Source: Callorhinchus milii
Lineage: Eukaryota
DNA length: 64,000 nt
NCBI RefSeq assembly: GCF_018977255.1
Contig: NW_024704745.1
Location: 36,270,001 to 36,334,000 of the forward strand
Reading direction: 5' to 3'
Below the pieces are notes generated by a model that saw only the letters and a list, made by a program, of their open reading frames with translations, made no database searches and was not told where the DNA came from. The stretch's first letter is position 1. Each line of letters opens with the position of its first letter. Positions 1 through 64,000 of this stretch are shown piece by piece. Both the position numbers and the translations under genes were made by a program.

Positions 1-178
1 GTTGATTGTTGAACAAGATGACTAGCTTCCTGACTAGCTTGGTGAGGTGGAGTGTGCATCCTTGCATGCTGATGCTACTAGTGCCTGAGGTGCGGAGGCA
101 TGACATTGGCTCTGCCGTTACCTGTCGGCTCTGGCTAACCTCACTTCCAGTGGCCTCGCTGTCACTTCTCACCTCTCA

Positions 179-1630: not shown

Positions 1631-2356
1631 CAGCCTTAATCTCATAGTGTTCTAGTACAAAAGGAGGAGAACACAAGCTTCATGCACCCTTCTGGCTCAC
1701 TGAGGAAGTTTCAAGCTGATGAAACTTTCCTTGCAGCAAATCAGGAGCTGTTAGTAAAGTGAAATTCAAGACATCCCTGTAGACCCAAAGAGAGCTCCAC
1801 CAAAATAAAACTTTGAAATGATTCACTAAGGCAGCACAGATATTAATGCGGCAGAGTTGAGGTGGTTGACGATGTGTCAACCTGGCTCAGTTAGGAACAT
1901 AGGATCATAGGAACAGGAATGGGCCATTCAGCCCTTTGAGACTGTTCCACCATTCAATTATATCATGGCTGATCTGTACCTCAACGAGTTTCCCGATTTT
2001 TTTCCATATCGCTTGATACCCTGACCTACCAAAAATCTATCAACCTCACACTTCAAGGTGTGGATGGATCCAGCATTCACAGCCTTTTGGGGAAATTCCA
2101 GATTTCTACCAGACTTTGAGTGAAAAAACACTTCCTGATTTCACTCTTAAATGGCCTGGTTCTAATTTTAAGACTATGCCTCTGTTTTAGATTTCCCCAC
2201 TAGAGGAAATACCTTATCTGTATTTACCCTATCAAATCCTTTTATCATCTTAAACACCTCAATCAAATCACCCCTCAACCTTCTAAACTCAAGGGAATCC
2301 AAGTTTATGCAGCATTTCCTCGTAACTTAACCCTTTAAGGCCTGGTAACATTCTAG

Positions 2357-3277
2357 CATGCCTGTCTGACATCGAGTCCTGGACGAGAGACAACTTTCTT
2401 CAGCTCAACATGCGTAAAACTGAGGCCCTCCTGATTGGCTCGTGTCAGTGCCTCCGCACCTCAGGCGCTGACAGCATCAGCATCCAAGGCTGCACTTTCC
2501 ACCTCTCAAAGCCAGTCAGGAACCTCGGTGTTCTGTTCGCCCCTGAGCTGTCCTTTCTCCCTCATATCCACGGCACAACTGGCACCGCCTTCCATCACCT
2601 CCGAAACATCGCCAGACAACGGTACTACCTCACCCCTCACGCTGCTGAAACTCTGGTCCACGCCTTTATCACCTCAAGGCTGGACTATGGGAACTCTCTC
2701 CTCATCGGCCTTCCCGGCACCTCCCTCCACAAGCTGCAGGTCATTCAGAACTCTGCAGCTCGTGTAATGTCCCGCACCAGGCTTCGGGACCACATCACTC
2801 CCACCCTCGCTCACCTCCACTGGCTCCCCATCCCCCAGAGGATCGAATTCAAGATCCTCATCCTCACCTACAAGGCCATTCATGGCCTTGCTCCCTCCTA
2901 CCTCTCCGATCTACTATCCCCCTATCTACCTGCCCGTACCATCCGTTCCTCTGGCTCCGGTCTGCTCCACATCCCCTATCCCAACCGCCCTACCATCGGT
3001 GGCCGGGCCATCAGCCTCTCAGCCCCGAGGCTCTGGAACTCTATCCCCAGTGCCTTCGCCGCCTCCTCCCTTTTCTCCTTCAAGGCCAGTCTCAAGACCT
3101 TTCTCTTTGACCGTGCCTTCAGCTCCCCTCTCGACTCTCTACCCCCTCCTCGCTCCCTCCCTTCCCTCCCCTCGACCATTTCCCCCCTGCTCGGGTCCTG
3201 ACCCAACTGTACAGCACCTTGGGACGTCCTCCCGATGTGAAAGGCGCTCTATAAATGGAATCTTGTTGTTGTTGTTG
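2357..3277 (+). mobile_element. Young 5'-truncated L2 LINE
   Basis: Intact ORF2 C-terminus (VHAFITSRLDYGNSLL, LHWLPIPQRIEFKIL), (TTG)n tail, possible 3-bp TSD tag. Confidence 0.9.
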
Positions 3278-3871
3278 TAGTGGTACCTGTGCTGCACCCC
3301 CTCCAGGGCCAATATATCTTTCCTGAGGTGTGGTGCCCAAAACTGAACGCAGTATTCCAGATGGGGTCTGACTAACGCTCTATAGAGCTGAAGCATCATT
3401 TCTTCCCCTTTGTATTCCAGACCCCTCGAGATAAAGGCCAACATTCCATTCGCCGTTTTTGATTAATTTTTGTACCTGGGAACCAGTGTTTAGTGATTTG
3501 TGGATATGGACACCCAAATCCCTTTGCTCCTCCATGATTCTTTGTCTTTCCCCAATAAGAAAATATTCTGCTTCATCTTTTTTCGATCCACAGTGGATGA
3601 CCTCACACTTCCCTACATTGAACTCCATCTGCACAGCTTTGCCCACTCACTTAATCTGTCTAAGTCCTTTGTAACTTCCTACTCCCATCTACACAACTTA
3701 CTGAGTCTCCAAGTTTAGTGTCGTCTGCAAACTTGGATATAAAACTTTCTATTCCTTCATCCAAGTCAATTATATATATGGCGAAAAGCTGAGGTCCCAG
3801 TACAGACCCCTGGGGGACAACACTTGTCATGTACCACCAATCGGGGAATGTTCCCTTTATCCCTGCTCTTT

Positions 3872-4188
3872 ATAATAATAATAATAATCCTTGCATTTGA
3901 TATAGCGCTTTTCACGTCAGGAGGACGTCCCAAAGCGCTTCACAGAACACACTGTAAAGTGAATTGACTGTATATTTGTGGACGAACGTGGCAGCCAATT
4001 GCGCTCAGCAATGTCCACAAACAGTCGTAGATTGAAAATGACCAATTTATTATTGTTTTTGGTTTATGAAGGGATTATTATTAGGCATGTGGAGTAAGAA
4101 AACTTGCCCAAGGTTTCGCCCTGCCTGGAATTGAACACAGGTCTCTCACTTGCAAAGCGAGTGCTCTAACCACTAAGCTACAGGACTC
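3872..4188 (-). mobile_element. tRNA-derived SINE, short subfamily
   Basis: tRNA-like head with A/B boxes, Deu-domain-like body, L2-like tail, (ATT)n. Confidence 0.9.
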
Positions 4189-5389
4189 TTTGTTTCCTGC
4201 TTCCCAACCAATTACCAAGCCACGTCATAAGGTTACTTCCGACTCCATGCGCTTCCATTTTGCTAATAAACTTTTGTGTGGGACCTTATCAAATGTCTTC
4301 TGAAAGTCTATATACATTACATCCATAGACACTCTCTTAACTACCCTTTTAGTGACCTCCTCAAAAAATTCAACTAGATTAGTCAGATACAGCCTACTCT
4401 TCACAAACCCATGCTGATTCACTTTGACTAGTTCATACCTGTCCAAGTGCTCAGTCACTCTGTCCCTGATGATGAATTCCAGTATTTTCCCTACAACTGA
4501 CGTTAAGATTTTTTCAAACATTAGGGTGACATTTGCAATGTTCCAATCTAAGACCACAATTCACAAATGCAGCTGCAATTTCCTCTCCTATTTCCTTTAA
4601 CACCCTGGGATGGAAACTATCAGGTCCTGGAGATTTACTCCATGTGAAGGGACTATATAAATGCAAGTTGTTGTTGTTGTTGTTGTCCTCCGAACCGCCG
4701 GCTCCTGCTGCTGTCAAGAGAAGATGGTTCACTGGGGGGAAGGATAGGATGGCCCAAAATGGGAATGGTTCTCGGGCTGGATCAAATCATCCCCCTTGTC
4801 GGATGTGGCCCTCGAACTGCGAATTGGACCACTCTGATCTAAATAATACTATTGTGAATCTGCAAAAATATTTTTTCTGCACTTGTTCATAATGTACCCA
4901 TAATGATTGTAAAATACAGGAGAGAAAATACTGCCATTTGTAGAAATTTGTGAGAATTTATGTGAACACAGTAACTGTCTGCTGGTTTAACATTTTTGTG
5001 TGTTTTTCTTTCACTTACTCCTTGTCACCTGAAGGTGGCGATCCATGTTGAGGTGTGGTATCCAGGCACGAGCTGAGGCCTTCTGATACTATGTCCAAGT
5101 GACTATTATTCATGTGCCTCTGGACAGTGATTACATTTATTCCACCTCGGAACAAACGTGACATTTTACTATAAGTTCATTTTATCAACAGTTTTGACTG
5201 TAGTTCCTCAAGTGCTTTGAGATGTGCACCAACATAGAAGATGCTATATAAATGCTTTGGCCAAAACATGATGAAAATCAAATGTCTGAAAGCACGTTAC
5301 AGAATTGAGATTAATTAGAAATCAAATGAATCTTTTTTTGTGGGTAAAAATGGTACTAATTAGCACCCTGCAGTGTCTTGAAAACAATG

Positions 5390-17770: not shown

Positions 17771-18076
17771 GTCCTCAGTGGTTAGAGCACTCGCTTTGCA
17801 AGCGAGAGACCTGAGTTCAATTCCAGGCAGGGTGAAACCTTAGGCAAGTTTCCTTACTCCACACACAGCCCTAATAATAATCCCTCCAAAACAAAAAACA
17901 ATAAAAANTTGGTCATTTTCAATCTACGACTTTGTGGGATATTGCTGTCCGCAATTGGCTGCCGCGTTCACCCACAAATATACAATCAATTCACTTTACA
18001 GTGTGTTCTGTGAAGCGCTTGGGACGTCCTCCCGACGTGAAAAGCGCTACATCAAATGCAAGGATTATTATTATTA
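17771..18076 (+). mobile_element. SINE, short subfamily
   Basis: Near-consensus copy; contains the single N at 17908. Confidence 0.9.
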
Positions 18077-22234: not shown

Positions 22235-23324
22235 CTAAGACGAGAATATGTATCACTGCATTGGAAAAGTTTTCAGACTAATTTCCACTCCTTTGGCTAC
22301 ATTGCTAGTTGCAAAAGCTGTGTTCCTGTGAAAAAGAGACAGCTGTCAGTATTGCCTTCACATAACATGGAGGAGCCCGGGGATGTGGTTGTTATAATAA
22401 TCCTTGCATTTGATTTAAAAATTCTTGCATTTGATACAGTTCCTGATCACAACATCCAGAAGTCTCAAAGCGTTTCACAGATAATAATAATAATATTTTT
22501 TGCATTTGATATCGCGCTATTCACGTCTTCTAGATATCTCAAAGTGCTTCACAGAGTAGACTGCAAAGTGAATTGACTGTATATGTGTGGGCAAAACGTG
22601 GCAGACATGGAGTGAGTGACCATTCTTTTTTAATCTGGGGGATTGTTGGCCAGAAAACTGGGAGAAATTCCCTTCTCTTTTCAAATATATCCACACAATT
22701 TTTAACATCCACCTGAACAGACAGACAGTATCTAGGTTTAATATCTGATCCGAATGACAAAGAATGATAAATCCCTTTGTTTCATTATACTGTATAAATA
22801 TACATCAACATACCTTGTATGACCTTATTAATTGCTTCGTGCATAAAAAAATCAGGGCAGCATTTCTGTGGCATCTCTTTTCATGGTAGATCACAACACA
22901 TAATGCAACACACCCCAGGACTGCATTGGGGTATCATCTTAGACTTTGATCCCAAGTCCTGACTTGGGGCTTTAATCCATAAACTTCTGACTCAGACGTG
23001 AATATGTTACCACTGAGCCATACTGATTTCCAATGATTGAAACCTCAGAATCTAGTGAACATGTCTAAAGGCAACAGCCTAGGAATGCTGTTGTGCCATC
23101 ATGTTAGAAGATATCTTTTTGCAATTGTTGCCAAAGTACAGTAGTACTACATACCTGAGGACAATTTTCACATTTTGGGCAATTATACATTATGTTCAGT
23201 GCTAACTCATCGGATACTGATTCAACTGAATCCATAGCAAGAAAAATGGCAGTGCTGAAATATTACGACTAGCTTTGGTGTCCTTTGTACCAAAATCGGG
23301 GTTATTTTCACACCGAAGTCAGTC

Positions 23325-24070
23325 AGTCGGCCAATGTCCGTCCGTCCGTCCGTCCGACCGCCCCTTCCTCCCTCCCTCCCTCCCTCCCTCCCTCCCTCTG
23401 TGGAGTCCTGTAGCTCAGTGGGTAGAGCACTCACCTCTCAAGCAAGAGACCTTGGTTCCATTCCCGGCAAAGCGAAACCTTGGGCAACTTTCCCTCAAGA
23501 AAAAAAACAATAATAAATTGGTCACTTTAATCCACGACTGTTTGTGGGACACAGCTGTGTGCGATTGGCTGCCGCGTTTCGCCCACAAGAAATATACAGT
23601 CAATTCACTTTACAGTTTATTCTTTAGGACATCTCAAAGCGCTTCACAGAATATATGTAAAAAGCGCTCTATTAAATGCAAGGATTATTATTATTATTCC
23701 TTCCTTTCTCTCTTTCTCTCTGTCTCTCGCTTTCTGTCTCTCTGTCTCTCTCTTTCTTTCTGTCTTTCTGTCTTTCTCTCTCTCTCTATACCTTACTATC
23801 GGAGGTGGAGCCTTCATCCTCCCTGCCCCCAGCCTTTGGGACTTCATCTCACAGTCCCTTCACCTCACCCTTCCCTTGTCTCCTTCAAGACAAGTCTCAA
23901 GACACTACTCTTCAACCGCAGCTCAGTGACCCTCCTACCCCTACCCTCCCTGACTTCCACCCTTCCTGATCCGAACCCCCAGTTCAGGTTGAAATCCTTT
24001 AATGTCCAGTGCTTTGGGACATTCTCTTGATGTGAAAAGCGCTATATAAATGTATTTTGCTGTTGTTGTT
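23325..24070 (+). repeat. (GTCC)n/(CCCT)n microsatellites, SINE 23400-23698, (CT)n tract, L2 3' end
   Basis: Read directly; explains chance ORF 23275..24030. Confidence 0.8.
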
Positions 24071-25252
24071 TGTTTCTTTTCTAATTTGCTGTTTGTGTCC
24101 TCCAAGAAAACATTACAACCCTCGTAAGTTTGAGGCTATGTTGCTGGGTCCGGATGCAAGTGGCTCAGGCTGGGATTAAAGGGCAAGGTAAAACATATGA
24201 TTGGGCTCAGTAATGGGTATAAGGAGTGTATGTGGCAGCGGGGTAGTGTGTGTGTGTGGAGTGTGTGTGTCCACTCATGTAGGATGTGCAAAGGTGGTGC
24301 ATGAAGCGGGGAAGGTTATTAACGACATACATTTCCTAAGCAGTGGGTTAAGTATTGCTCGGACTTTGAGGAATGAGGCTTTTGTATTCTGTTCTCTCAC
24401 TGTTGTGGCAGAGCCATTCTTCTCAAATCAAACTCAAAACAAGCTGGAGATAAGCTTCTTAAGGTTTATTGTACCAGCAGCAGTATAGATTGTTATATGT
24501 ATTGCGTAGTTTCCCCAGAGAACATCACAGCTGCTATAGCATATTTATAACAGAAATTCCAGGTCAATCTGTAAGGTATTTGCGTGAAATTATGAAACCG
24601 TTATGACCTTTAGAGTTGTGATTTTTCTGTATGGATTTTGTGTAAACATGTGTTAGACATTCTGGATGAGGCAGTAGAGTCACATCATGTTGATGCATGT
24701 GTGATGGTGCTCCACGGTTTGTTGCATGGTTAGTTCTGCTCTTCATCAGAAGACAGCAGTCAGCAGCATGTTCCCAATGAGGGAAAAATTCAGATGGCAG
24801 ATGAATCACTCAGTCAGTCACGTCAGTCTGATTTATCATCCTTTGGATGAGACGTTAAACCAAGTCCCATCTTCCTGTTCAGGTGCATATTAAAGATCTC
24901 ATGGCACTATTTGAAAGAGAAGGGCATGTCTCCCAGTGTCCTGGACAACAAATCCCTCAAATAAAATTGGTTATTCACTTCATGGCTGTTTGTGGGACAT
25001 TGCTATGTACAAACTTCCTGCTGTGTTTCACCCACAGTCAAAACCACTTTACAGTACATCCTGTGAAATGTTTTGAGACATATTAATGATGTGATAAGGT
25101 GCTACATCAAATTCAAGGATTATTATTATCGTCAAAAGGAGAGAAAATTAAAACACGGTTACATTACTCAAAAGTCGTAGAATTGCTACTTTAGAAATTT
25201 CAATCACTTTAATGAATGTAAATAATTATTTTGCATTGACAAATTAGCTTAC

Positions 25253-26562: not shown

Positions 26563-27165
26563 AACAACAACAACAATAAAATTACATTTGTAAAGCGCCT
26601 TTCACGTGGGGAGGACATCGCATGGCACTGGACAGACAGAGTTTTGGACCGGAGCTGGGGGTCGGGGTCGGGAAGGGTGGAGGGCAGTGGAGGGGAAGCA
26701 GGGAAATCAAAAGCACGATCGAAGAGGAGGGCCTTGAGATGTGTCTTGAAGGAGCCAAGGGAGGGGCGAGGCGGAGGGACGGCGAGATGGAGTTCCAGAG
26801 GGTGGGGGCAAAGTGGCGGAAGGCCTCCCCGCCAATAGTGGGGCAAGTGAGGCGGGGGACATGAAGCAGGCCGGAGCCCGCTGAGTGGAGGGAGCGAGCA
26901 GGATGGTAGGGGATTAGGAGGTCGCAGAGTTAGGGGGGAACAAGGCCACGGAGGGCTTTGAAGGTGAGGAGCAGAATCTTGAAATGTATCCTCTGTGTGA
27001 TGGGAAGCCAGTGGAGTCGGGCGAGGATGGGGGCGATAGGGCCCCGGAGCCCGGTGCGGGAGAGGACACGGGCTGCAGAGTTCTGGATGATTTGCAGTCA
27101 ATGGAGGGAGGAGTTGGGGAGGCTGATAAGCAATGAGTTTGCATAGTCAAGCCTCGATATAATGC
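26563..27165 (-). mobile_element. L2 fragment
   Basis: Reverse complement of L2 ORF2 end with (AAC)n tail. Confidence 0.85.
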
Positions 27166-27889
27166 TGACAACAGTTATCATACAATATTAACAATCACAC
27201 GGAAAACGAGTCCCAAATCTATCCATTGATCTTTATCAATCTTCATCCAGAGTGGATCTGGAATCTGTTGTCTTGTAGCTGTTCGAGCACTGATGTGCTC
27301 ATGTGGTCTATGCCTCTAGCACTCAAAGAGGAAATTAAATGTGGTCTCTTGTCCTCACGAGGGTCATCCCTAAAGTGACCGTGAGGTCTAACTCCTTCTA
27401 AAAGAATTTCTAAACTGCTGTTGAATTGACTAATATCCTATGGAATCTTGCTCAATCCCATCTGATTTTGTAGACCTGTGACTCATGTTACCTTTTCAAG
27501 GACCCACACCTAAGATATTCCCTGCTGTCTGCAGATTCTATCCTCCCCACAGAGCACACATTTAAGATAGAGGCCGGAAACACAAAAATAATCACAAAAA
27601 GATTTACGATAAAAGTTATATTTATGTCAGGAGGATGTCTCAAAGCACATGACAATTTTGGCTGGGCACTTAAACTGGAGGTGAGAGCTGAGGGGTGTGG
27701 GTAGGAGAAGATAATTGAAAGCAGAATCAAATGGCCAAAATCAGGGTAAAATAAACAGCAGGTTAGAAATTATTTTAGAAGTGAGTTAGACAGAACCCTG
27801 AATAAGAAAATATATATCAAAAAGGTATGAGGAGTAAGCAGGGGAATGGGATTGATTAAAATGGTTTAAGTAGAACGACAAACAGAACA

Positions 27890-28817
27890 GAGTTAATAAT
27901 CCTTGTATTTGCATTTGATATAGCACTTTATCACAGAATATACTGTAAATTGACTGTATATTTTGTGGGCGAAACTCAGCAGCCAATTGCGCACAGCAGT
28001 GTCCCACAAACATTTGTGGATTGAGTGACCAATTTTTTTTTTGAAAGGATTATTACCCCCGGAAAAGTAATCCACCAATTGACTATCAAATCAGGGTCCT
28101 ACTTACTGGTAGGTAAACAGAGGCGTGTGGAGTAAGGTTCTCGCAAGCGAAAAACCTGGGTTCAATTCCCGCCAGGGTGAAAGTTTGGGCATGTTTCCTT
28201 ACTCCACACACCTGATAATAATTGCTCATGAAAAAAAGCAACAATAATAATTTGATCACTCAATCCACGACTGTTTCTGGGACAGTGCTGTGCGCATTTG
28301 GCTGCCGCGTTTCACCCACAAGATATATAGTCAATTCACTTTACAGTATATTCTGTAAAGCGCTTTGAGATGTCTACAAGATGTGAAAAATGTTATATCA
28401 AATACAAGGATTAAATTATTATATTAAGAAACTTGTCCAACATTTCGTTCTGCCGGGAATCGAAACTCAGGTCTCTCGCTTGTTATAATAATAATAATCC
28501 TTGCATTTGATATAGCGCTTTTCACGTCTTCTAGACGTCTCAAAGTGCTTCACAGAATATACTGTAAAGTGAATTGACTGTATATTTGTGGGCGAACGCG
28601 GCAGACAATTGCGCACAAACAAATTGTCCCACAAACAGTCGTAGATTGAAAATGAACCAATTTATTATTGTTTTTTGTTTTGGAGGGTTTATTATTAGGC
28701 GTGTGGAGTAAGGAAACTTGCCTAAGGTTTCGCCCTGCCTGGAATTGAACTCAGGTCTCTCGCTTGCAAAGCGAGTGCTCTTAGGTGAGTGCTCTAACCG
28801 TTGAGCTACAGGACTCT
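27890..28817. mobile_element. Cluster of four SINE pieces in both orientations
   Basis: Long form (-) about 27890-28135, (+) 28141-28420, (-) fragment about 28425-28480, full (-) about 28483-28817. Confidence 0.8.
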
Positions 28818-29392: not shown

Positions 29393-29688
29393 AATAATAA
29401 TAATCCTTGCATTTGATATAGCACTTTTCACATCTTCTAGACGTCTCAAAGCGCTTCACAGAATAGACTGTATATTTGTGGGCGAAATGCGGCAGCCAAT
29501 TACGCACAGCAGTGTCCCACAAACAGTTGTGGATTGAAATGACCAATTTATTATTGTTTTTTTTGAGGGATTATTATTAGGCATGTGGAGTAAGGAAACT
29601 TGCCCAAGGTTTCGCCCTCTGCCGGGAATCGAACCCAGGTGTCTCGCTTTCAAAGCGAGTGCTCTAACCACTGAGCTACAGGACTCCA
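29393..29688 (-). mobile_element. SINE, short subfamily
   Basis: Head and tail as consensus. Confidence 0.9.
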
Positions 29689-30762
29689 CTTCAAATTTCA
29701 AACAAGTCTAAAGAAGCAATGCGTTGTGTGAAGGATTTTGGATGTTTCAACCTAATAAGTCATTATTGGGTGGCATTTGTGGAGTCTCAATATGAAATGA
29801 CACAAATTTCATGTCCAAGTTGAAGCATTATTGCATTATAACAGTGTTATTTAAGCGCCCATGAGTATTTAAAAGTAGTCAGGTTTATGCCTGTGTGGAG
29901 TGTTGAAATCAAAATACCCAATAATATAATTGCTATTTTTAATATTGATATTGATAGACTCTGATGAACTTGTGTTTGAAATATGTATATCTCAAAAAGC
30001 AATCTCTACAATCTGTGTATTGAATATTCCTCAAAAACTTCACTTATTCCTGTCTTCAGTGTCACTGATGGTTGATTTTGCACTCCAAATCTATGACCTC
30101 ATATTGTCAGCAGCTACAAAATTGATTAAGGTACAAATTCACAACAGAGAATTCATTCCACAAGTGAGATGGATCTAATTATTTATTGTGGCTCAGTGTT
30201 CCAATGTTTATTCCATTTATAATATTACAATTACCCATCAGGAATTCCAGATCACATACAGAGGCATTCAATATAAAACATCTTTGTAGAGAAATTCTAC
30301 CTGAGTCTAGATTTACTCTTTTTATGAAGCATTTTAAAGTGCTTAAAATTTGGCAAATTCTTCAATTCATTCTTACAATTCATTTTTTGAAGCCCATGTT
30401 GTATAGGTTTTAAAAGCACTGTCTTGAAAATTAAGGCTGTATTCAACAATTTGTTAAATGATGCAGTCAGTCAAAAGCAAACACAGCCTGACATGTGAGG
30501 GGTCCCCTAACTGTCTAGTTAGTGAGATTAGTAAATTTCTGTTATCTAGGAACCATTCCAAACTGGAGCACAATCGTTCATTCAGACCCCTAGGATCAAA
30601 ACATTTTGAAGAAAAATCTCGACCAGCTCATGAGTGCCAAGTATTGTTTTTATTGCCTACAACAAAAAGTTCTACCACATCCATAAATATAATTTCATTG
30701 TTTTGTTGTTCATGTACTTTGATCAAGTATATTAAACAGGTTTTGATAGAACCCATTGTAAC

Positions 30763-31639
30763 GCGAATGCACCACATGACGTCAACGTGACTTGGACACA
30801 AGAACAGACACATTTACAGTCTGGATATGGGAAACCGTCTGCCACTGGGCCTCAGGAAGTGATCAGTAAACTAAACATTTCTACACAAGACTGGACCGAT
30901 GGGAAAGTATACTTCTGCATTGTCAGCCATGACGATATACTGACTCCCATCAGAAAAAAGATATTTAAGGAGCCCGTTGAGTACAGGAAACAACCTTCAG
31001 TGTATCTGCTCCTCCCATCGGCAGAAGAATTGTCTGCTCAGCAGTCTGTCACCCTCAGTTGCCTGGTGAAGAACTTCGCTCCCAAAGAGATCTTTGTGGA
31101 GTGGACTGTCAATGACCAATCGATTGATGCCAACAAATACAAGAACACTGAGGTGATGGCAGACAGTGCAGATGGCAATTACTCCATGTACAGCATGTTA
31201 TCCATCTCAGCCGGAGATTGGGACAGAGGCTATTCCTACTCCTGTGTGGTCGGACATGAAACTTTCCCACTGAAGACCCTGACCAGAGCCGTTAATAAAT
31301 CCAGCGAGATTATCCCAACCGAGACGATGCTGGAAGGTGTTCAACAAGATGAACGTGACAACCTCTGGCCGACTGCTTCCACCTTCATCATCCTCTTCTT
31401 CCTGAGTATTTTCTACAGTGCCACGGTCACTCTATTTAAGGTCGAATGAGTTTATTACCATCAGCTTCACCGATGTTCTTCGTCTGTTTGTGTTTATCTT
31501 CAATCTCCTGTGACAGAGTATGTGATGTCTTGTTTCACCCATTGAACACATTCATGGAAAGTGAACATTGTATTGTGCAGCTATGTGAATTTTAGTGACG
31601 TTTCTTATTGTTAGTTTATGTTACAATGTGTCTTGTACA
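30763..31639 (+). pseudogene. IGHM: Processed (intronless) retrocopy of membrane-form IgM heavy chain: partial Cmu3, Cmu4, TM1, TM2, probable 3'UTR
   Basis: Frame open 30763-31449. Cmu3-like ANAPHDVNVTWTQEQ...DWTDGKVYFCIVSH; Cmu4-like QPSVYLLLPSAEELSAQ...CLVKNF...VEWTVND...YKNTEVMA...YSCVVGHE...VNKSS; TM NLWPTASTFIILFFLSIFYSATVTLFK-VE*. Domains are fused without introns at about 30970/1, 31306/7 and 31440/1. YKNTEVMA and VNKSS recall shark IgM Cmu4 rather than IgW/IgNAR (from memory). UTR assignment of 31450-31639 is inferred. Confidence 0.9.
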
Positions 31640-31953
31640 GAGTCCTGTAGCTCAGTGGTTAGAGCACTCGCATTGCAAGCGAGACACCCGAGTTCAATTC
31701 CAGGCAGGGCGAAACCTTGGGCAAGTTTCCTTACTCCACACGCCTAATAATAATCCCACCAAAACCCAAAACAATAATAAATTGGTCATTTTCAATCTAC
31801 GACTGTTTGTGGGACATTGCTGTGCGCAATTGGCTGCCGCGTTCGCCCACAAATATACAGTCAATTCACTTTACAGTGTGTTCTGTGAAGCGCTTTGGGA
31901 TGTCCTCCCGACGTGAAAAGCACTATATCAAATGCAAGGATTATTATTATTAT
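31640..31953 (+). mobile_element. Young full-length SINE directly 3' of the IgM retrocopy
   Basis: gagtcctgtagctcagtggttagagc...gggatgtcctcccgacgtgaaaagcactatatcaaatgcaagg(att)n; only a few differences from other young copies. Confidence 0.92.
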
Positions 31954-33209
31954 GATTATAGAGAGAATCACATGAAAACATGGAATTTCAAGTAATGAGG
32001 ATTGTGTGCTTGAATCCCATCCAAATGATATGTTAACTTATCTGCACCCACTACAAATGCTTTGTTCCTTCTTAGGTGTTGGACAGGCAACACGTAGGGT
32101 AAACCTTTATTTAATATTCTACTCAATTCATTAAAAAGTGTAACAGCTAAAATTATATTGAAAATAGAAAATGTATTTAATATTATTATATTAGAATAGA
32201 TTTACAGTCGAGATTCCATGTAATTATATTTCAGTGAATCAATTCAAAAGTGACATAGATTGGGAATAGTTTAAGATGTATTTTATTAAAATACATATCA
32301 AACACCATCTACTTTATTTTTGTGAGGCAACTGTTTCCACAATATTACTGAGTGGGGATCAGAGCAACATTATTTTCCTATTCAAGTTCTGTCTTTTCAC
32401 CAGTGCTAAAGTATGCCTAGTTGATCTTAGTGTTAACAAGTTACATGCTACTGTCAAAGGAATATTCATGATTGAGTGGGCAGTTAGTAGGATTGGGAAC
32501 CTATTCCTTTATGTGAAAGGTTCTTCACTATCAGCTATTGCTTAAGATTTCTCCTGGTGTCCTAGCCAACAATCCCCTGAATTAAATTGGTCATTCACTC
32601 TATCACTGCTTGTGGGACATTGATCTACACAAATTGACTGCAGTATTTGCTCACAAAACATAGTCACTCCACTTTACATTATATCCTGTGAAACACTTGT
32701 AACATCCTCCTGAATTGAAAAATGCTATACAAAATGCAACGTTTTTTCAAGCCATAAATCTCTCTCTTTCTCTCTCTCTTGCAGTGTGTGTGTCGTCAAA
32801 AGCAATTCTTTTCTCAGAGCTTTGTCACAACTTAGCACAGTGGAGACTTAATGGAGACTCTTTCCTCCCACTGAATCCTGGTCTTTGGAGTAATACCTCA
32901 GAACCAAGCTACTACTGATAGTAGTGTTTCTCTGCACAAGTTTCAAAGTGTAATAATAATAATAATCCTTGCATTTGATATAGCACCTTTCACATTGGGT
33001 AGACACCTCAAAGCGCTTCACAGGATATACTGTAAAGTGTAGTGATTGTAACTTGCAGGCAAATGAGGAAGCTAATTTATGCTCAGCAATGTCCTATGAA
33101 CACGCAATTTTGTATGACATATACAGAATACCAAATAGAATTTGATAAAGATTGACTGCTGTAGAAGAACAGAATAAGACTTGCAATACATGCTATACTC
33201 TACTTCAAC

Positions 33210-33244
<35 letters not shown>

Positions 33245-33478
33245 CCTTGCATTTGATATAGCGCTTTTCACGTCGGGAGGACGTCCCAAAGCGCTTCACA
33301 GAACACACTGTAAAGTGAATTGACTGTATATTTGTGGGCAAATGCGGCAGCCAATTGCACACAGCAATGTCCCACAAACAGTCGTAGATTGAAAATGACC
33401 AATTTATTATTGTTTTTGGTTTTATGAGGGATTATTATTAGGCTCTGTGTGGAGTAAGGAAACTTGCCCAAGGTTTGA
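33210..33478 (-). mobile_element. 5'-truncated SINE with long (TAA)n tail
   Basis: Stops at aaaccttggg; a similar copy lies at 35420-35661. Confidence 0.85.
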
Positions 33479-33735
33479 AACCAGATAATCAATTGATCAT
33501 GAACTGTATGTTTGCTGATTTAAGTATTACAAGTATAGTGAGTCAAAATCATTGTTCTAATGTACCTCAACATCAAGATTTAGAGTAATCCTAAATAATT
33601 CCATACCTTATTTAATGACTTAGATTCATTTGCATTTTGAAATATCCCCAAACTTCTAAATAATGGTTATGTCAGTAAAAGTAACCGAAAATGTTTAGAG
33701 CTGTCATCTTGGATTTGTGTTTAGGGTAATCATAC

Positions 33736-33837
33736 ATCTCCGATTTCCGAGGACAGTCCCCAGAATAGATATTGTGTCCTTGGCCATATTTGTCCTGTCT
33801 TAAATTCAGCAACAAACTGAACAAGAACAATAGCATT
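33736..33837 (-). CDS. Candidate exon NAIVLVQFVAEFKTGQIWPRTQYLFWGLSSEIGD (phase 0 to 0)
   Basis: Acceptor tgtatctgttttag|, donor GAT|gtatga, 102 nt open. Confidence 0.45.
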
Positions 33838-35799
33838 CTAAAACAGATACAGTCATCAGAGTAATACAGCCATTCATATGACAAGCTTTTCCAGTACTGC
33901 CAGTATCAGAAATTATAGTGAGTTCAATTTATTTACATGTGTCCCTGGATTTAGTTTATAGTTTAGAGGGTTGCCTGCTTTTACAGTAGCAGTGGTGATT
34001 CTGCCAGGCATGGCCTACAAGAATACAATACAAAATACTTAACAGTCCTGGCTGGGCACCCAAGCTGGGGTGGGATCAGGAGAAGTGGGGATTAGAAAGA
34101 TGACCGAAAGCACAGTCAAAGAGGTAGGTCTAAACAAACAAGATGGCGGACTAGGAGACTACAAGATGGTACACGTTGGAGTCACTGGTTTATTTTTTGT
34201 CTTTGCTGCATGGAAGCACAGAACACCTAACCGTATCAAAGCCATTTTACAGGATAATGACTTAATTAAATCAATATCTTGCAAAGCGACAACTGAAAGG
34301 CTACTCTTGGTCCATAAACAGTGGTCTGACTAAGTATAATTACAGGGTGACAGATAGAACAGTTTCAGCCAGCATTAAGCACTCCCATTAATGAGAAGTT
34401 CGGAGGTGAGCATGCGTCAAAATACATTTCAACCTGGTTCCTTATACAAGGAACAAAATATATTAAAGAATGCCACATTTTTGATCCCATTATTCTTCCT
34501 GTGTTCATGACTTCTATTAGGTCAGGGTAGTAAGGGATATGGGGCAAGGACAGGTAAATGGAGTTGAATTACAGATCAGCCGTGATAAAATGGCAGAACA
34601 GGCTCGAGAGGCCGAATAGCCTACCCTTTTTCTATGTTTCTGTGTTTCTGTGACAACAATGATGTTACAGCTAATAAGAAGAATATAATCTTGAAAATGT
34701 ACCTCTTTGACCATGCTATTGGTCATCTTTACCCTCCACACACCCCGTTGGCTCCCACCCCCAGCTCGGGTGCGTATCCAGCACTGTGAATGAAGTGCTT
34801 TCAGACATCCTCCTGGCTATATTAATGCAAATTTTATTCTCTATTTGTGTAAGCAGTTTTCATGCTTCTTTGTTTCCTTCGTATCTGCCGACAGAAGCAA
34901 CAAAGGTATACTGTTATATATTCTCTCTTAAAATCAAATCAGCAGATTTAACTGTATTTCTCCGTTTACCTTCTTGTGATGCAAATTTACTTCCTCATCC
35001 TGCTTTTTATCAAAGTAATTTGTTTTATCCAGTGCCAATGTGAATGGTAAGATCGTGAACGATCTTCAGATCTACGACTTATCTGAGGGCTGCAATTTGT
35101 AAAGTCTTTACAGAGATAGATGCAGTGATGATTACATTCCTTCTCATGTACCTTTATGCTTAATATTAGTTGAACAAAGTGTGACAAAGTGTTCTGTATT
35201 TGAAAACTGCAAGCTGCAACAATGGTTTAAAAAAACATAAAGCTTTCCTGGGTAAATACTGGCCAAGACAGGATAATACTGAAAGTTAGAAATAATTAGG
35301 CAATTAAAAAACAATTGTTGATCAGGGTTGCTAACATATGACACAAACATTTTGGGGGTGAAATTAGCAACTTTTCGATTGGCGCTATACCATGTACAAG
35401 AATTATTATTATTAGTTTGATGTAATAATAATAATAATAATCCTTTCATTTGATATAGCGCTTTTTACATCTTCTAGACAACTCAAAGCGCTTCACAGAA
35501 TAGACTGTAAAGTGAATTGACCGTATATTTGTGGGCGAAATGTGGCAGCCAATTGCGCACAGCAGTGTCCCATAAACAGTCGTTGATTGAAATGACCAAT
35601 TTATTATTTTCTTGAGGGATTATTATCAGACGTGTGGAGTAAGGAAACTTGCCCAAGGTTTCATCCTTAATATATATACATTATATATATATGAGAATAT
35701 AATTCGCATATGAAATACACCAGCACTTCCACGTTAATTTTAAGTAAATTACTTTATTCATGTAAATTAAACCTCTTTCTAATCCTGTTATATAAATGT

Positions 35800-39030: not shown

Positions 39031-42000
39031 GAATGCATGTTAACTACTCTAAGATAGCTTCCCTTATTATTCCCTTATTAGGAGAATAATAATGATATTG
39101 TAGTTATTTTCATGCATTCTACTGTAAATTTTTAAATGTTAGATTTAGTGTGTTGCCATATTTTTCCTTTGGTTCTTTCTCATTGCTGTAAACTGAGCTC
39201 TTTAGACATTTGCCTTTTACAGGCAGATCAATTATAGCATTGTGTGCACAATTATTTAGAGCAGGAATACTGTACATTATTTACACTGTACAGTACTGTC
39301 AAAATTAAGGATTAATTTGCTGTGGGTTGGAGAGGTTTTGACAGTATAGAGTCTTGTAAATAAACTATGCTCATTTGAAATTCAAGCAGTGCCTTTTATT
39401 GATCTTTGGGATTTACTCTCCCTGGTTGTGATCCTCAAATAATCCTTTCCTTGGTTTTGAGGAAAACTAAGGTACTTTACTTGACTAACTGTTGGGAGTA
39501 TCATTAGTCATACCACGCTGAGGTTAAAAACACACTCATGACTGAATACAGAAACCAAGTGGCTGTGCATTAGGGAAATCTTTTTAAAATTAAGAGTTAT
39601 CATGTTGTGTCCATTTGCTGTAGCCAGTTTCAATCCGCCCTTCTAATGGGATTTACAATTATAAGCATGCAGCACACACTTTGCCACAACTAGCAAACAG
39701 TACAAGATAACCCCTTAATCTCCAGGGCTTGGGAGTGCAAGACACATTATATTTACAAACCTTACCAAGGCACCCAGGTTAATTTGCAGAAGAGCGACTG
39801 CAGTATCTCAGATATCATCCCAGTGAAGTGCTCTGAGATGGAACTCTCCTTGAAGGGTGCTTTATCAATACAAGTTGTTGTCTCAAGTTGTTGTCTGATG
39901 TGTATTCAATTACTGTTTTGGGATAAAACAGAATTGGACACACCATTTGTTTAAGGGAGATGTTGGGAGATGGAGTTGATACTCACTTTAGTAAAGCTGG
40001 CAAATGTTGATATGTTTTGTTGTTCAGGATTAGTTTTGCAGAGAGGACGCTTGGATCAAAAGGGAACCCTATTATTATGTCCCTGCCATGGTAAGCTAAT
40101 TTAATGGGTGTTCTTATCCATTCCTTGAAATGTATCGTACATGTATCCTATATTTCTAATAGGAAACATAATTTGCATTAAAAATTCCACCTGACACAAC
40201 TTGAGGAGCATGCCATAACCCAAAACAACTGAATGGCAGGAACATGAGGCATGCATCTGAATTCATTACCTCGAGAGCAATCAAATATAGATCCTGTTTT
40301 AGAACTAATATTGTTTGAATAAGGAGGCTAGAAGCTAACAATGGTTAGATATTAGCAATATTCAATGCAACAAGAAATAAGAAGCTGTTGGCTAACATTT
40401 GGCCATTTGAATGAGAGCTTGTTTCATGCACTTATAACTCATATCTAACAAATTATCTACAGTCTATTTGCTATTACATAATTTAATACAACTTGTGCAG
40501 AGTGATGTTGTCACTACAATAGTGTTTTAGATATAAGCTGCTATTATTAATACCTAGAAATGATTAGCCAATTTATACTTCCAAAAACAAATTCTGTGTA
40601 ATGATATGCAGTATTAGATTTCGTAACAGAAAGCTGTTTAAAGTTAAAAGTTGCCTCAGAACAAAATGGCTTCTGTAAGTTTATTATTAAGTCTCACATG
40701 TGGAGTCAAAGTGCATTATGCATACTTATCAAATTGCTAAGAAATATCGAATTGGGAATTGGTGAAACGTGTAAGATTATTCCCAGAAATCAAATTTCAT
40801 TGCCTTGAAAGTAAAGGTGAGTTACAAATCTCACCTTTGCAATGTCAGGGTCTTGTACATATTTTCCATCATTTTCTGTAATTTGAGCCTTCGCAAATGG
40901 CTGAATACAGGGAATCTGTGAATATCACAACATACATTTGTATAGCACCTTTCATGTTGGGAGGACGTCCCAAAGCGCTGGACAGTCATTGTTTCGGACC
41001 CGAGCTGGGGGTTAAGATTGGGGAGGGTGGAGGGTAGGGGGGAAGGAGAGTGATCGAAAGCACGGTCGAAGAGGAGGGTCTTGAAGGAGGCAACGGAGGA
41101 GGCGAGGCAGAGAGACTGCGGAATGGAGTTCCAGAGGGTGGGGGCAGAGTGGCAGAAGGCTCACCTGCCAATGGTGGGGTGGCCAGGCAGAAGACGTGAA
41201 GCAGGCCTGAGCCTGCTAAGTGGAGGGAGCGGGCTGGATGGTAGGAGGTTAGGAGGTCACAGAGGTAGGGGGCAGCAAGACCATGGAGGATATTGAAGGT
41301 AAGGACCAGTATCTTGAACTGTATCCTCTGTGTGATGGGAAGCCAGTGGAGTCGGGCGAGGATGGGGGTGATAAGGTCACGTAGCATGGTGCGGGAGAAC
41401 ACAGGCTGCAGAGTTCTGAGTGATCTGCAGCCTATGGAGGAAGGAGATAATAGTGCAAGCTGGTAATTATAATTCACAAATTCGCAAAGTACGTAATTTT
41501 AAAACCTAAATTTTGACAAGACTGGGTAGAACTTTATAAAATGTTTGGACATGACAAGTATTTGAGGTGTAGCAGATTGACTCATAGTTTCATTCCTAAC
41601 TGGTTAAAAAGAGGTCTAGAAGTTATAATGATATGAAGAGATGAACAGTTATTCCACGAGTGCTACTGAGTCTGTGACAAAATTAGCAGCGCGATGCCTC
41701 CATATCAATGCTTAAGAACTGATAAGAACTATAATATCTTGCCTTCATGAATGAAAATCGGCAATATTAAATGAACTGAAACAAAATTTTATTTTCTGAG
41801 AATATGAAAAACAGCACAAGGCAAAGCCAATTCAAAGTTCTGATTTTACCATAAAATATTCACTAGTGCTAGTCTCAGTGCAAGAACCATACATTTATGC
41901 AGTGGGAAGCTTTTAATACTATACTAAAATTACACACACAAGCATTTATATTGGAGTTGGGACTTGGGTAACATCACTTTATGGGCTTACAAATCTTTAC

Positions 42001-45884: not shown

Positions 45885-47272
45885 GAACAACAACAACAAA
45901 ATTACATTTATAGAGCGCCTTTCACATCGGGAGGACGTCCCAAGGCGCTGGACAGTCAGGGTTCAGGAACCGAGCATGTGGGAGGGGTGGGAGGGCGACC
46001 GAAGGCATGATCGAAGAGGAGGGTCTTGAGACCAGCCTTGAAGGAGGCAAGGGAGGAAGCGAGGTGAAGGGACTGTGGGATGGAGTTCCAAAGTCTGGGG
46101 GCAGAGAGGCTGAAAGCTCGGCGGATCGAGCGGAGCCCGCTGAATGGAGAGAGTGGGCAGGTTGGGAGGGAGTCAGCAGGTTAGAGAGGTAGGAGGGTCA
46201 AGGCCATGGATGGCATTGAAAGTGAGGACGAGGATCTTGAATTCGATCCTCTGGGGGATTGGGAGCCAGCGGAGTCAGGCGAGGGTGGGTGTGATGGAGT
46301 CATGGAGCCTGGTGCGCGAGAGTGCATGAGCTGCAGAATTTTGGATAATCAGCAGCTTGTGAAGGGAAGAGTTGGGAAGGCCGATGAGGAGGGAATTTCT
46401 ATAATTAAGCCTTGATGTGACGAATGCGTGGGTGAGGGTTTCGACAGCCTGAGGAGTGACGCAGTGGCGGATTCTGTCAATGTTGCAGAGGTGGTGATAG
46501 GCAGTGTTGGTCATGGTGCGGATGTGGGGGAGAAAGGACAGTTCAGGTTCCTGACTGGCTTAGTGAGGTTGAGTGGTAAAACGCCTTTTTGTGGATTATG
46601 TTTCTGTTTTGATTCTGTACACTTATTTGCACTCTCTGATCTCTGCTAATAGGATATGGTTGTCTGACAGTACCTTGCCCCAAATGCAGTCGAAATCCTA
46701 GTGTAGGCATTTGTCACCTCGCGCCTGGATTACTCGAACACACTCCTTGCTTGTCTCCCCAGCTCCACTGTACAAAAAATCCAGCTCATTCAGAACTCTG
46801 CTGCTCACATATTGACCTGGACTAAACTCTGTATCCCCATCTCACCAGTTCTGGCCAGGCTCCACTGGCACCTCATCACCAAACGGATCAACTTCAAGAT
46901 CCTCACTCATGTTCAAATCCATTCACCCTATGGCACCCCTCTACTTCTCTGACTTCTACACTCCCCAATCCACCACCCGGTGCCTCCGCTCGACTGGCAA
47001 CGGCCTCCTGATTGTCCCTCACACCCTCCGCTCTGCCATTGGAGGTCACGATTTCAGCCCCTATGCCTCAAAGCTCTGTCTCAATCCTTCCACCTTGCCC
47101 CCTCTCTCCCCTTTTTCAAGTTCCGCCTGAAAACCTTCATTTTCGACCATGCTTAAAGTCACGTCCACCCCACCCCACTTCACCCCCGCAGCTCGGAGTC
47201 ACGCTCCGCCACTGTTAAGCACTCTGTGTCACTATCCTGCATGGAGGGCGCTACTTAAGTGCAAGTTGTTGG
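45885..47272. mobile_element. Head-to-head L2 pair: (-) 45885-46530 and (+) 46660-47272
   Basis: Tails point outward; AFVTSRLNYRNSLLIGLP motif. Confidence 0.8.
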
Positions 47273-49712: not shown

Positions 49713-50060
49713 TTTGCAAGTGAGAGAGACCTGAGTTCAATTCCAGGCAGGGCGAAACCTTGGGCAAGTTTCCTTACTCCACACGCCTAATAATAATCCC
49801 TCCAAAACCAAAAAAACAATAATAAATTGGTCATTTTCAATCTACGACTGTTTGTGGGACATTGCTGTGCGCAATTAGCTGCCGCGTTCGCCCACAAATA
49901 TACAGTCAATTCACTTTACAGAGTGTTCTGTGAAGCGCTTTGGGACGTCCTCCCGACGTGAAAAGCGCTATATCAAATGCAAGGATTATTATTATTATTA
50001 TTATAATAATAATAATCTTTGCATTTGATATAGCGCTTTTCACGTCGGGAGGACTTCCCA
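49713..50060. mobile_element. SINE (+) 49713-50003 fused tail-to-tail with an inverted SINE tail
   Basis: (ATT)n runs into (AAT)n followed by the reverse-complement tail. Confidence 0.85.
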
Positions 50061-51644: not shown

Positions 51645-53625
51645 AGAGGTGACTGTAAGCACGATCAAAAAGGAAGGCCTTTAGGCAGGATTTCAAGGTA
51701 GAAAGGAAGGGAACAAAGCAGAGGGATTGAGGGAGAGAGTTCCAGAGTTTCGGGAATAATGCGTTAAGGCTTGGCCACCGATGGTGGAACGGAGGGGACA
51801 AGAGACAAACAGGAGGGTGGAGCCAGTTGAGCGGAGGCAGGTGGTATTGGTTTGAGGGGGTAAGCAAGTCAGATAAGTAGGGAAATGTGAGGCCATGAAT
51901 GGATTTGAAAATAAGTGAGAGGATCTTGAAATCGACCCGTTCAGTGATTGGGAGTCCGTGGAGGTTGGCAAGGACTGGTGTGATGGGGGTACAGAATTTT
52001 GTGCTGGTGAGGATCCGTGCAGTGGAGTTTTTAATGAATTGAATTTTGTGTATAATAATAATAATAATCCTTGCATTTGATATAGCGCTTTTCACGTCGG
52101 GAGGACGTCCCAAAGCGCTTCACAGAACACACTGTAAAGTGAATTGACTGTATATTTGTGGGTGAACGCGGCAGCCAATTGCGCACAGCAATGTCCCACA
52201 AACAGTCGTTGATTGAAAATGACCAATTTATTATTGTGTTTTGTTTTGGAGGATTATTATTAGGCGTGTGGAGTAAGGAAACTTGCCCAAGGTTTCGCCC
52301 TGCCTGGAATTGAACTCAGGTCTCTCACTTGCAAAGCGAGTGCTCTAACCACTGAGCTACAGGACTCCACGAGTCCTGGTGGGGAGACTAATGTGGAGGG
52401 CATTGAAATAGTCCAACCGGGAAGTGAGGCGTGGATGCGTGGTGTGTCCGTTGTGAGGTATAGACGGAGACGGACAATGTGGTGGAGGTGGAAAAAAGTG
52501 GTCCTGGTTAGTGAACAGATGTTAGATAGAAAAGAAAGCTGGCGATCGAACCTGGCGCCTAAGTTACGCATGGGTTCAGAGAGTTTGAGGGAGATCCCGG
52601 GAGGTTGAGGAGTTCAGAGCCGCAGGAGAGAAGATGTTGATGGGAGCCAAAGAGTATGGCTTTGTTCTTGCTGATATTCAGCTGCAGGAAATGTGCGCTC
52701 ATCCAGGCCTGATGTGTGTCAAACAAGCTGACAGGACAATAGCAGATTGGGAGTCACAGCTGGAGGAGTAGATTTGATTGTCATGCGCATACATGTGGAA
52801 GTTGACCCCATGTCTGCGTATGACATCGCCGAGAGGGAGCATGTTGATGAGCAAAAGAAGGGGGCCAAGGATGGAGCCTTGGTCATAGAGAGAGAGAGAA
52901 TGTCATTTGTTACTTTGATATATTCTGAGCATTCACAGAATTTATGGAGTTATAGTTATTTTGGATGCCGTGGTACAAAGAAATAATAACTGAATGACTT
53001 CTTCCTCAAGGTGGTTCATTGTTCAGTTCATGATTTAGAATTATTTGCTCACGAATTTTCTTCCAACAATAAAGGGTTGCTTCTACGGAAACTCCCTCTT
53101 GTCGGCCTTCCCAACTCTTCCCTCCACAAGCTGCAGATCATCCAGAGCTCTGCAGCTTGTGTCCTTTCCCGCACCAGATTCAGTGACACCATTACCCCCA
53201 CCCTCACCCGGCTCCAATGGCTCCCCATCCCTCAGAGGATTTAAAATCTTCGTCCTCATTTTCAAGGCCCTCCATGGCTTTGCCCCATCCTACATCTCTG
53301 ACATGCTGACCCCCTATCAACCTGTCCGCTCCCTCCGTTCAGCAGGCTCCGGCCTGCTCCATGTCTCCTGCCTGAACCATCGATGGCTGGGCTTTCAGCC
53401 TCTCTGCCCCCTCCCTTTGGAACTCCATCCCACACTCCCTTCACCTTGCTCCCTCCCTTGCCTTCTTCAAGGCATGACTCAAGACCCTCCTTCGTCTGTG
53501 CCTTCAACCACCCTCCTACCCTCTCTGCCCTCCCTCATCTGAACCCTGCCCCCACACGCTCGAGTTCTGATCCCTGACTGTTCAGCGCCTTGGGACATCC
53601 TCCCGATGTGAATGGTGCTTTACAA
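51645..53625. mobile_element. L2 (-) 51645-52880 interrupted by SINE (-) 52052-52370, then L2 (+) 53095-53625
   Basis: L2 motifs in ORFs 51433..52113, 52260..52571 and 53011..53244. Confidence 0.8.
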
Positions 53626-58097: not shown

Positions 58098-58389
58098 GCT
58101 TTGCAAGTGAGAGACCTGAGTTCAATTCCAGGCAGGGCGAAACCTTGGGCAAGTTTCCTTACTCCACACGCCAAATAATAATCCCTCCAAAAAAACAAAA
58201 ACAATAATAAATTGGTCATTTTCAATCCACGACTGTTTGTGGGACATTGCTGTGCGCAATTGGCTGCCGCGTTCGCCCACAAATATACAGTCAATTCACT
58301 TTACAGTGTGTTCTGTGAAGCGCTTTGGGACGTTCTCCCGACGTGAAAAGCGCTATATCAAATGCATGGATTATTATTATTATTATTAT
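58098..58389 (+). mobile_element. SINE, short subfamily, 5'-truncated in the tRNA head
   Basis: Begins at gctttgcaag. Confidence 0.9.
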
Positions 58390-63925: not shown

Positions 63926-64000
63926 TGTTAAATGAAATGGTCAGTTAAGTGGAGAATTCTTGTCACTGGTCTTGGTAGACAGAAGGCTTTGTGCATTTCC

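Follow-up and report, generated by a model that had tools for sequence, protein, structure and literature searches.

The IgM copy and its exon junctions

The window, by which we mean the whole 64-kb stretch of Callorhinchus milii DNA analysed here, contains at 30734–31449 on the plus strand a part of Cmu3 followed by Cmu4, TM1 and TM2 of the C. milii IgM heavy chain, with the introns absent. The open reading frame extends from 30787 to 31449 (+), and the same frame is free of stop codons from 30736, giving 237 codons. Translation of 30751–31446 yields a Pfam C1-set match at residues 84–171 (E = 2e-30). The parts of the copy and the sequence adjoining it downstream are as follows.

30734–30762 (+): 5′-most Cmu3 remnant, KQVLIEPIVT, in a frame that differs from that of the rest; matches parental KQVLMEPIVT
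30762/30763 (+): site of a frameshifting deletion of 16 nt relative to the parental mRNA, predicted from the protein alignment
30763–30975 (+): rest of Cmu3 (ANAPHDVNVTW ... KKIFKEP), aligned without gaps to AFM89341.1
30976–31306 (+): Cmu4 up to the internal (cryptic) membrane-form donor, ending ...TRAVNKSS; Pfam C1-set; secretory tailpiece missing
31307–31440 (+): equivalent of the TM1 exon (EIIPTETMLEGVQQDERDNLWPTASTFIILFFLSIFYSATVTLFK), aligned to 8ema, AFM89341.1 and AFK11405.1
31441–31449 (+): coding part of TM2, V E stop (V K stop in the parental cDNAs)
31450–31639 (+): presumed remnant of the mu-m 3′ UTR, 190 nt, not repeated in the window by self-BLAST
31640–31956 (+): complete tRNA-derived SINE in the same orientation as the copy, abutting the UTR remnant at the first base of the SINE

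Among solved structures the copy is most similar to membrane IgM, entered as ‘isoform 2 of Ig heavy constant mu’ (8ema, E = 1.7e-54), with an alignment that spans late Cmu3, Cmu4 and the transmembrane segment up to ...TLFKV. Of the 29 proteins closest to the ORF, nearly all are Ig heavy chains of C. milii (lowest E-value 1e-133). Two cDNA-derived GenBank proteins, AFM89341.1 and AFK11405.1, found by cluster look-up and both entered as ‘transmembrane form of immunoglobulin heavy chain [Callorhinchus milii]’, provide the most direct comparison: the translation of 30763–31446 aligns to the former over 228 of 228 residues without a gap (94.7% identity) and to the latter over 228 residues, likewise ungapped (93.9% identity). 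These alignments cross three exon junctions, namely Cmu3/Cmu4 at ~30975/30976, KSS|E(I/V)IPTE at 31306/31307 and TLFK|V at 31440/31441. Since the aligned proteins are derived from mu-m cDNA, the continuity of the alignment means that all three junctions are those of genuine spliced mu-m mRNA. The Cmu3/Cmu4 boundary is placed to within ±2 nt by the exon ends of the bamboo shark and by the point at which the Ensembl isoforms diverge.

The second of these junctions distinguishes the membrane form. The internal Cmu4 donor, AAATCCAGCG, occupies 31297–31306 and is followed by AG from 31307, such that the copy and the membrane cDNA read KSSE(V/I)IPTE where secreted forms read KSSGKPSF.... The copy thereby combines the characters of the mu-m isoform, with a C1-set domain, a join from the internal Cmu4 donor into TM1/TM2, the tailpiece gone and a conserved transmembrane segment. 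As judged from sequence, the template is a mature mu-m transcript, spliced from Cmu3 to Cmu4, from the internal Cmu4 donor to TM1 and from TM1 to TM2. A preliminary description of this DNA had proposed that Cmu3, Cmu4, TM1 and TM2 are joined without introns, that the internal donor was used with removal of the secretory tailpiece and that TM1 meets TM2 at FK|V. The gapless 228-residue alignment to cDNA-derived membrane IgM bears out each of these points, including the placing of the donor junction at 31306/31307 (KSS|EIIPTE here, against KSS|GKPSF in secreted forms).

Loci of the parental type were compared at the same junctions. The Ensembl isoforms of the parental C. milii clusters have their exon bodies in common and vary at each joint: the Cmu3/Cmu4 joint occurs as KEPVYLLLP, TEPGEQPMYLLLP and TEPVLYTKQPSVYLLLP, and the Cmu4/TM1 joint as several differing joins. 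After TLFK, where the copy has VE-stop, several parental isoforms run into VGRGNSLTL or VGRVHS, which is the translation expected of a GT-intron; the parental DNA after TLFK is therefore intron. In the bamboo-shark IgM locus the exons lie at 23111–23419 (Cmu3), 23877–24206 (Cmu4, ending ...DKSS) and 27309–27443 (TM1), then TM2, with the same three junctions interrupted by introns of ~457 bp, 3.1 kb and 140 bp. From the protein models and this one elasmobranch locus we infer that the parental C. milii IgM clusters have introns at the three junctions. The earlier identification of the sequence as a retrocopy of a spliced membrane-IgM mRNA is thus sustained from two sides, by junctions equal to those of mu-m cDNA and by parental loci with introns (isoform read-through and the bamboo-shark locus).

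The 5′ end required revision. The copy had been taken to start at 30763; homology in fact begins at ~30734 in another frame, which puts the 5′ end ~18 codons into the Cmu3 exon. An upstream ORF (30458–30790) ends in ...IKQVLIEPIVT, the parental counterpart being ...SPKQVLMEPIVTLTC, and inspection of the sequence upstream of 30734 revealed no FLPPSP-like coding. A truncation point within an exon fits incomplete reverse transcription. Where the two frames meet, the DNA has gta ac|gcg aat gca, translated as V T(ac-)|A N A, against V T L T C V V A N A in the parent, whose protein across the site is ...SPKQVLMEPIVT-LTCVV-ANAPHD. A deletion of 16 nt appears to have removed the third base of the Thr codon together with LTCVV, including the first Cmu3 cysteine, and to have shifted the frame. 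Truncation within Cmu3, as originally described, is retained, while the loss of the first cysteine, then ascribed to that truncation, is reassigned to the internal deletion.

Retroelements around the copy and the route of copying

No other Ig exon accompanies the copy. When 84 Ig heavy-chain proteins, full-length V-Cmu1-4 sequences among them, were compared with the 64 kb by tblastn, no V, Cmu1, Cmu2 or additional Ig exon came up, and the sole extra matches were false exons derived from SINEs. This agrees with the preliminary description as regards V segments; its further statement that the copy lies far from any Ig cluster holds for these 64 kb, the span for which it is shown. A comparison of 147 stop-to-stop ORFs of at least 71 aa with Pfam returned RVT_1 (two ORFs) and the Ig domain of the copy and nothing else, a host-gene scan that covers ORFs of this length, short exons being below its reach. 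The flanks of the copy, 29690–30733 and 31966–32547, are unique within the window by self-BLAST; LTR-like or other repeats bracketing the copy are ruled out on these grounds.

The 3′ end departs from that of an L1-type retrocopy, in which a poly(A) tail with its signal and a target-site duplication of ~7–20 bp are expected. A poly(A)-signal scan found neither AATAAA nor ATTAAA in 31450–31639, the interval 31000–35228 lacks any run of 6 or more A, and the copy bears no poly(A) tail. A target-site duplication is likewise absent: the k-mers common to 30640–30760 and 31450–33500 are scattered 8–10-mers, none of them at the ends. The preliminary description had drawn an analogy with an L1 genome. 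With no tail and no duplication, and with local retroposons that are a CR1-like LINE and a SINE, this analogy is abandoned here.

What follows the unique, presumed UTR remnant directly is the SINE at 31640, which starts at the first base of its consensus, GAGTCCTG. A retroelement complete to its 5′ end, fused directly and in the same orientation, is the configuration of a template-switch junction. ARAGORN recognises a tRNA-Ala-like head at 31641–31712, and the element ends in (ATT)4 at 31940–31951. It diverges by 2.8% from the local young consensus, and other copies in the window are 92–96% identical. Its age and that of the IgM copy (~1–2% divergence) are compatible, and do not discriminate between readings.

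The family to which this SINE belongs accounts for 50 intervals and at least 11% of the window, or about one per 1.3 kb. Examples with (ATT)n tails are:

3872–4188 (−)
17774–18076 (+)
28485–28817 (−)
49714–50060 (+)
52052–52367 (−)
58098–58386 (+)

Several copies lie only 2–4% from their own consensus, which points to recent activity. One pair is inverted, tail to tail, ~60 bp apart (28143–28422 (+) and 28485–28817 (−)). ARAGORN calls the SINE head at 29614–29684 (−) tRNA-Ser(TGA) and the other three heads tRNA-Ala(TGC); the former, at 84% identity, probably belongs to an older copy altered by mutation. A single N, at 17908, falls inside a SINE copy.

LINE fragments, with RVT_1 in their ORFs, are also present in the window. 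The SINE 3′ tail, ~50 nt before the microsatellite, is common to the sequence right after the LINE ORF ends in four places. The LINE 3′ ends concerned, directly after ORF2-like frames, and the SINE-tail alignments at LINE ends are:

3207–3277: LINE 3′ end; SINE-tail alignment 3207–3260
63211–63281: LINE 3′ end; SINE-tail alignment 63211–63264
45888–45955 (−): LINE 3′ end; SINE-tail alignment 45902–45955
40935–40985 (−): LINE 3′ end; SINE-tail alignment 40935–40985
26565–26636 (−): LINE 3′ end

A tail held in common in this way is the mark of a stringent-type SINE/LINE pair. The microsatellites differ, the LINE ending in (TTG)n and its partner SINE in (ATT)n. The segments 2001–4000 and 62001–64000 are the most GC-rich (0.49–0.53) and most C-skewed (~−0.32) of the window and coincide with proline/serine-rich 3′ parts of LINE ORFs. 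For the genome at large, Venkatesh et al. 2007 described a tRNA-derived SINE and a CR1-like LINE, each making up 7–8% of the C. milii genome, with 41 of 46 bases identical at the 3′ end of SINE and LINE and a reverse transcriptase of CR1-like type (PMC1845163). In the window there are ~34 (ATT)n or (TTG)n tails on either strand, against five T-runs of 9–11 (minus-strand A-runs), and no A-run of 9 or more occurs on the plus strand of the window.

Taken together, the copy is very probably a dead-on-arrival processed pseudogene of the C. milii membrane-form IgM heavy-chain mRNA. Reverse transcription of spliced mu-m mRNA as its origin we regard as established, apart from read-level confirmation, and in the explanation as a whole, weighted to this processed-pseudogene core, our confidence is fairly high. 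The reverse transcriptase would have been supplied by a LINE, with incomplete reverse transcription leaving the 5′ truncation. Tail-stringent LINEs need their own 3′ tail and are not expected to copy ordinary mRNAs (PMC3747384), and stringent LINEs rarely make retrocopies, as the work of Suh 2015 is represented in PMC5470649.

How such a copy might nevertheless arise is suggested by its 3′ end. Given the lack of poly(A) tail, poly(A) signal and target-site duplication, together with a junction at the first base of a complete sense SINE that carries the LINE tail, we propose priming on the SINE tail. The LINE enzyme would have primed on this tail, with its (ATT)n end, and would have reached the IgM sequence by one of two routes: either it switched template, leaving the SINE RNA at its 5′ end and continuing on the mu-m 3′ UTR, or the parental 3′ UTR already contained the SINE. 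We put this SINE-primed route forward tentatively. The probability that a sense SINE lies a few hundred bases or less from the stop codon by chance is roughly 0.2; the unit of IgM and SINE is not flanked by a target-site duplication; and a hairpin can be drawn in the SINE and LINE tails, yet it is no more stable than in shuffled sequence (z of −0.4 to −0.6, about −0.5).

A possible alternative, also short of probable, is that the copy is a processed pseudogene to which the SINE is unrelated, the element having inserted later into or after the 3′ UTR of the copy, or the copy having landed beside an existing SINE. In one variant a poly(A)-recognising enzyme made the copy and the tail was lost afterwards; in another, a partial cDNA was captured in double-strand-break repair, leaving neither tail nor target-site duplication. 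The high SINE density given above makes a chance neighbour easier to accept, and the 580 bp after the SINE (31966–32547), unique in the window, could be either continuing UTR or target DNA. Clear target-site duplications are missing from other full-length SINE copies in the window as well, and little weight can be given to the lack of one here. Set against this, neither candidate end is followed by an A-rich remnant, though with 3 unique changes among 181 C-domain residues the copy is young, insertions with a poly(A) tail hardly occur in the window, and the SINE meets the junction precisely with its first base, nothing being lost from its 5′ end.

On the SINE-primed route, as on any route to a heritable copy, the event would have occurred in a germline or early embryonic cell containing IgM mRNA. 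Both the cell type, which the preliminary description likewise took to be germ line or early embryo, and the kind of transcript are what we infer. The full chain, in which a tail-specific CR1-like LINE primed on its partner SINE and jumped onto an IgM transcript, so that spliced mu-m mRNA was present in germline-lineage cells, strikes us as rather unlikely when taken as a whole.

State of the copy and the gene model at the locus

The copy has no start codon, leader, signal peptide, V(D)J, Cmu1, Cmu2 or promoter, and is both 5′ truncated and frameshifted. Compared with 17 C. milii IgM sequences, seven of its residues are unique. Three of these lie in the C domains (181 residues), at positions otherwise invariant, and four in the TM part, where there are only two comparators; one of the latter turns the terminal KVK into KVE. 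With a divergence of ~1–2%, an open frame of ~230 codons is expected by chance and is not a sign of function.

A protein model of the same locus is present in UniProt/Ensembl as A0A4W3JEY8 (P0004; ‘Ig-like domain-containing protein’, 297 aa). Its first 100 residues correspond to the upstream non-Ig ORF, with 99% identity to 30458–30757 by tblastn, and the remainder follows the copy. Two amino acids distinguish the model from the window, one of them being P versus L at 30940, with the window allele derived. The model fuses an unrelated AT-rich upstream ORF, which contributes its N-terminal 93 residues, to the Ig part across the frameshift. The entry is probably an annotation artefact, in which case UniProt lists a pseudogene as a protein.

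The model nonetheless implies a further reading, that the open Cmu3-Cmu4-TM frame is used as an expressed retrogene or exapted exon, for example by splicing to upstream exons. We consider this very improbable. Its basis is the run of 237 codons from 30736 without stops and the existence of the model itself, and each is weakened by what has been described: such a frame is expected at this divergence, and the N-terminus of the model is an unrelated ORF joined across a frameshift. Moreover, the start codon, the signal peptide and the first Cmu3 cysteine are all missing, and the invariant cytoplasmic KVK has become KVE. A functional truncated receptor is ruled out by the same three missing features.

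An artefact, whether cDNA contamination or a chimeric assembly of an IgM transcript with genomic repeats, was named in the preliminary description as a condition that could overturn its reading and can hardly be credited, because A0A4W3JEY8, obtained independently of the window sequence, contains both the non-Ig flank (99% over 100 aa) and the copy while differing at two residues, and because the copy is cut short at its 5′ end, carries a frameshift and has diverged from all known cDNAs.

Related cases and significance

Processed Ig pseudogenes are known in humans, where they include a processed IGHE pseudogene and a dispersed processed lambda-like gene. The C. milii copy resembles these in that a constant-region mRNA was reverse-transcribed, the introns are precisely gone and the product is non-functional, and in that Ig transcripts are implied for cells of the germline lineage; the human ones were inserted away from the Ig locus. 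Unlike the human cases, which are of L1 type, it is holocephalan and comes from the membrane splice form, has neither poly(A) tail nor target-site duplication, and ends in a SINE with a CR1-like tail. No report of a processed Ig pseudogene in chondrichthyans was found in the literature searched. The kind of pseudogene is therefore already known, and what is new is the lineage together with the membrane splice form as source.

Ig genes are generally regarded as silent outside lymphocytes, and a heritable copy of spliced IgM accordingly implies that cells of the germ line or early embryo contained Ig transcripts. Germline V(D)J joining is documented in cartilaginous fish (PMC2193156) and bears on the same question as the C. 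milii retrocopy. Like the copy, the germline-joined Ig genes are evidence of Ig loci that are active in chondrichthyan germline cells; they differ in that they arise by RAG rearrangement at the DNA level within clusters and keep their introns, whereas the copy arose through RNA, has no introns and lies outside any cluster seen. The germline-joined genes are those described in PMC2193156. If the SINE-primed reading is true, it would provide RNA-level evidence, independent of the germline-joined genes, for active Ig loci in the chondrichthyan germ line.

In its architecture the copy with its SINE resembles chimeras of the U6-L1 type and a tripartite pseudogene of Magnaporthe, in which a 3′ retroelement extending to its 5′ end is fused to a 5′-truncated copy of a cellular RNA, as described in PMC4476161 and PMC2104539. 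It would differ from the known vertebrate template-switch chimeras, for which the enzyme is L1, in that the 3′ partner is a SINE dependent on a stringent CR1-like LINE. A single target-site duplication, which would prove one event, was not found around the copy and SINE. A different parallel is provided by the CR1-dominated genomes of birds, where the dominant LINE recognises its own 3′ tail and mRNA copies are rare and would be expected to depend on such a tail (Suh 2015, as quoted in PMC5470649), though taxon and LINE lineage are not the same. An mRNA copy that lacks a tail and ends in a SINE would exemplify how genomes dominated by CR1-like LINEs still gain retrocopies.

Two observations were made on the proteins compared. 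The parental IgM Ensembl models P0069 (A0A4W3GZW2; residues 88–128) and P0001 (~88–105) contain a stretch, …VWYKETCPRFRPLPGIELVS…, that is translated antisense SINE and matches the SINE copies at 29583–29699, 52263–52368 and 4084–4198 of the window. A SINE in the Cmu2-Cmu3 intron has thus been called as coding, and the family sits inside IgM clusters too. In addition, P0052, a 232-aa ‘hypothetical protein, partial [Aeromonas veronii]’ from a contig of 742 nt, is 49% identical to shark IgM constant domains and has the appearance of host DNA, from a vertebrate, that entered a bacterial assembly.
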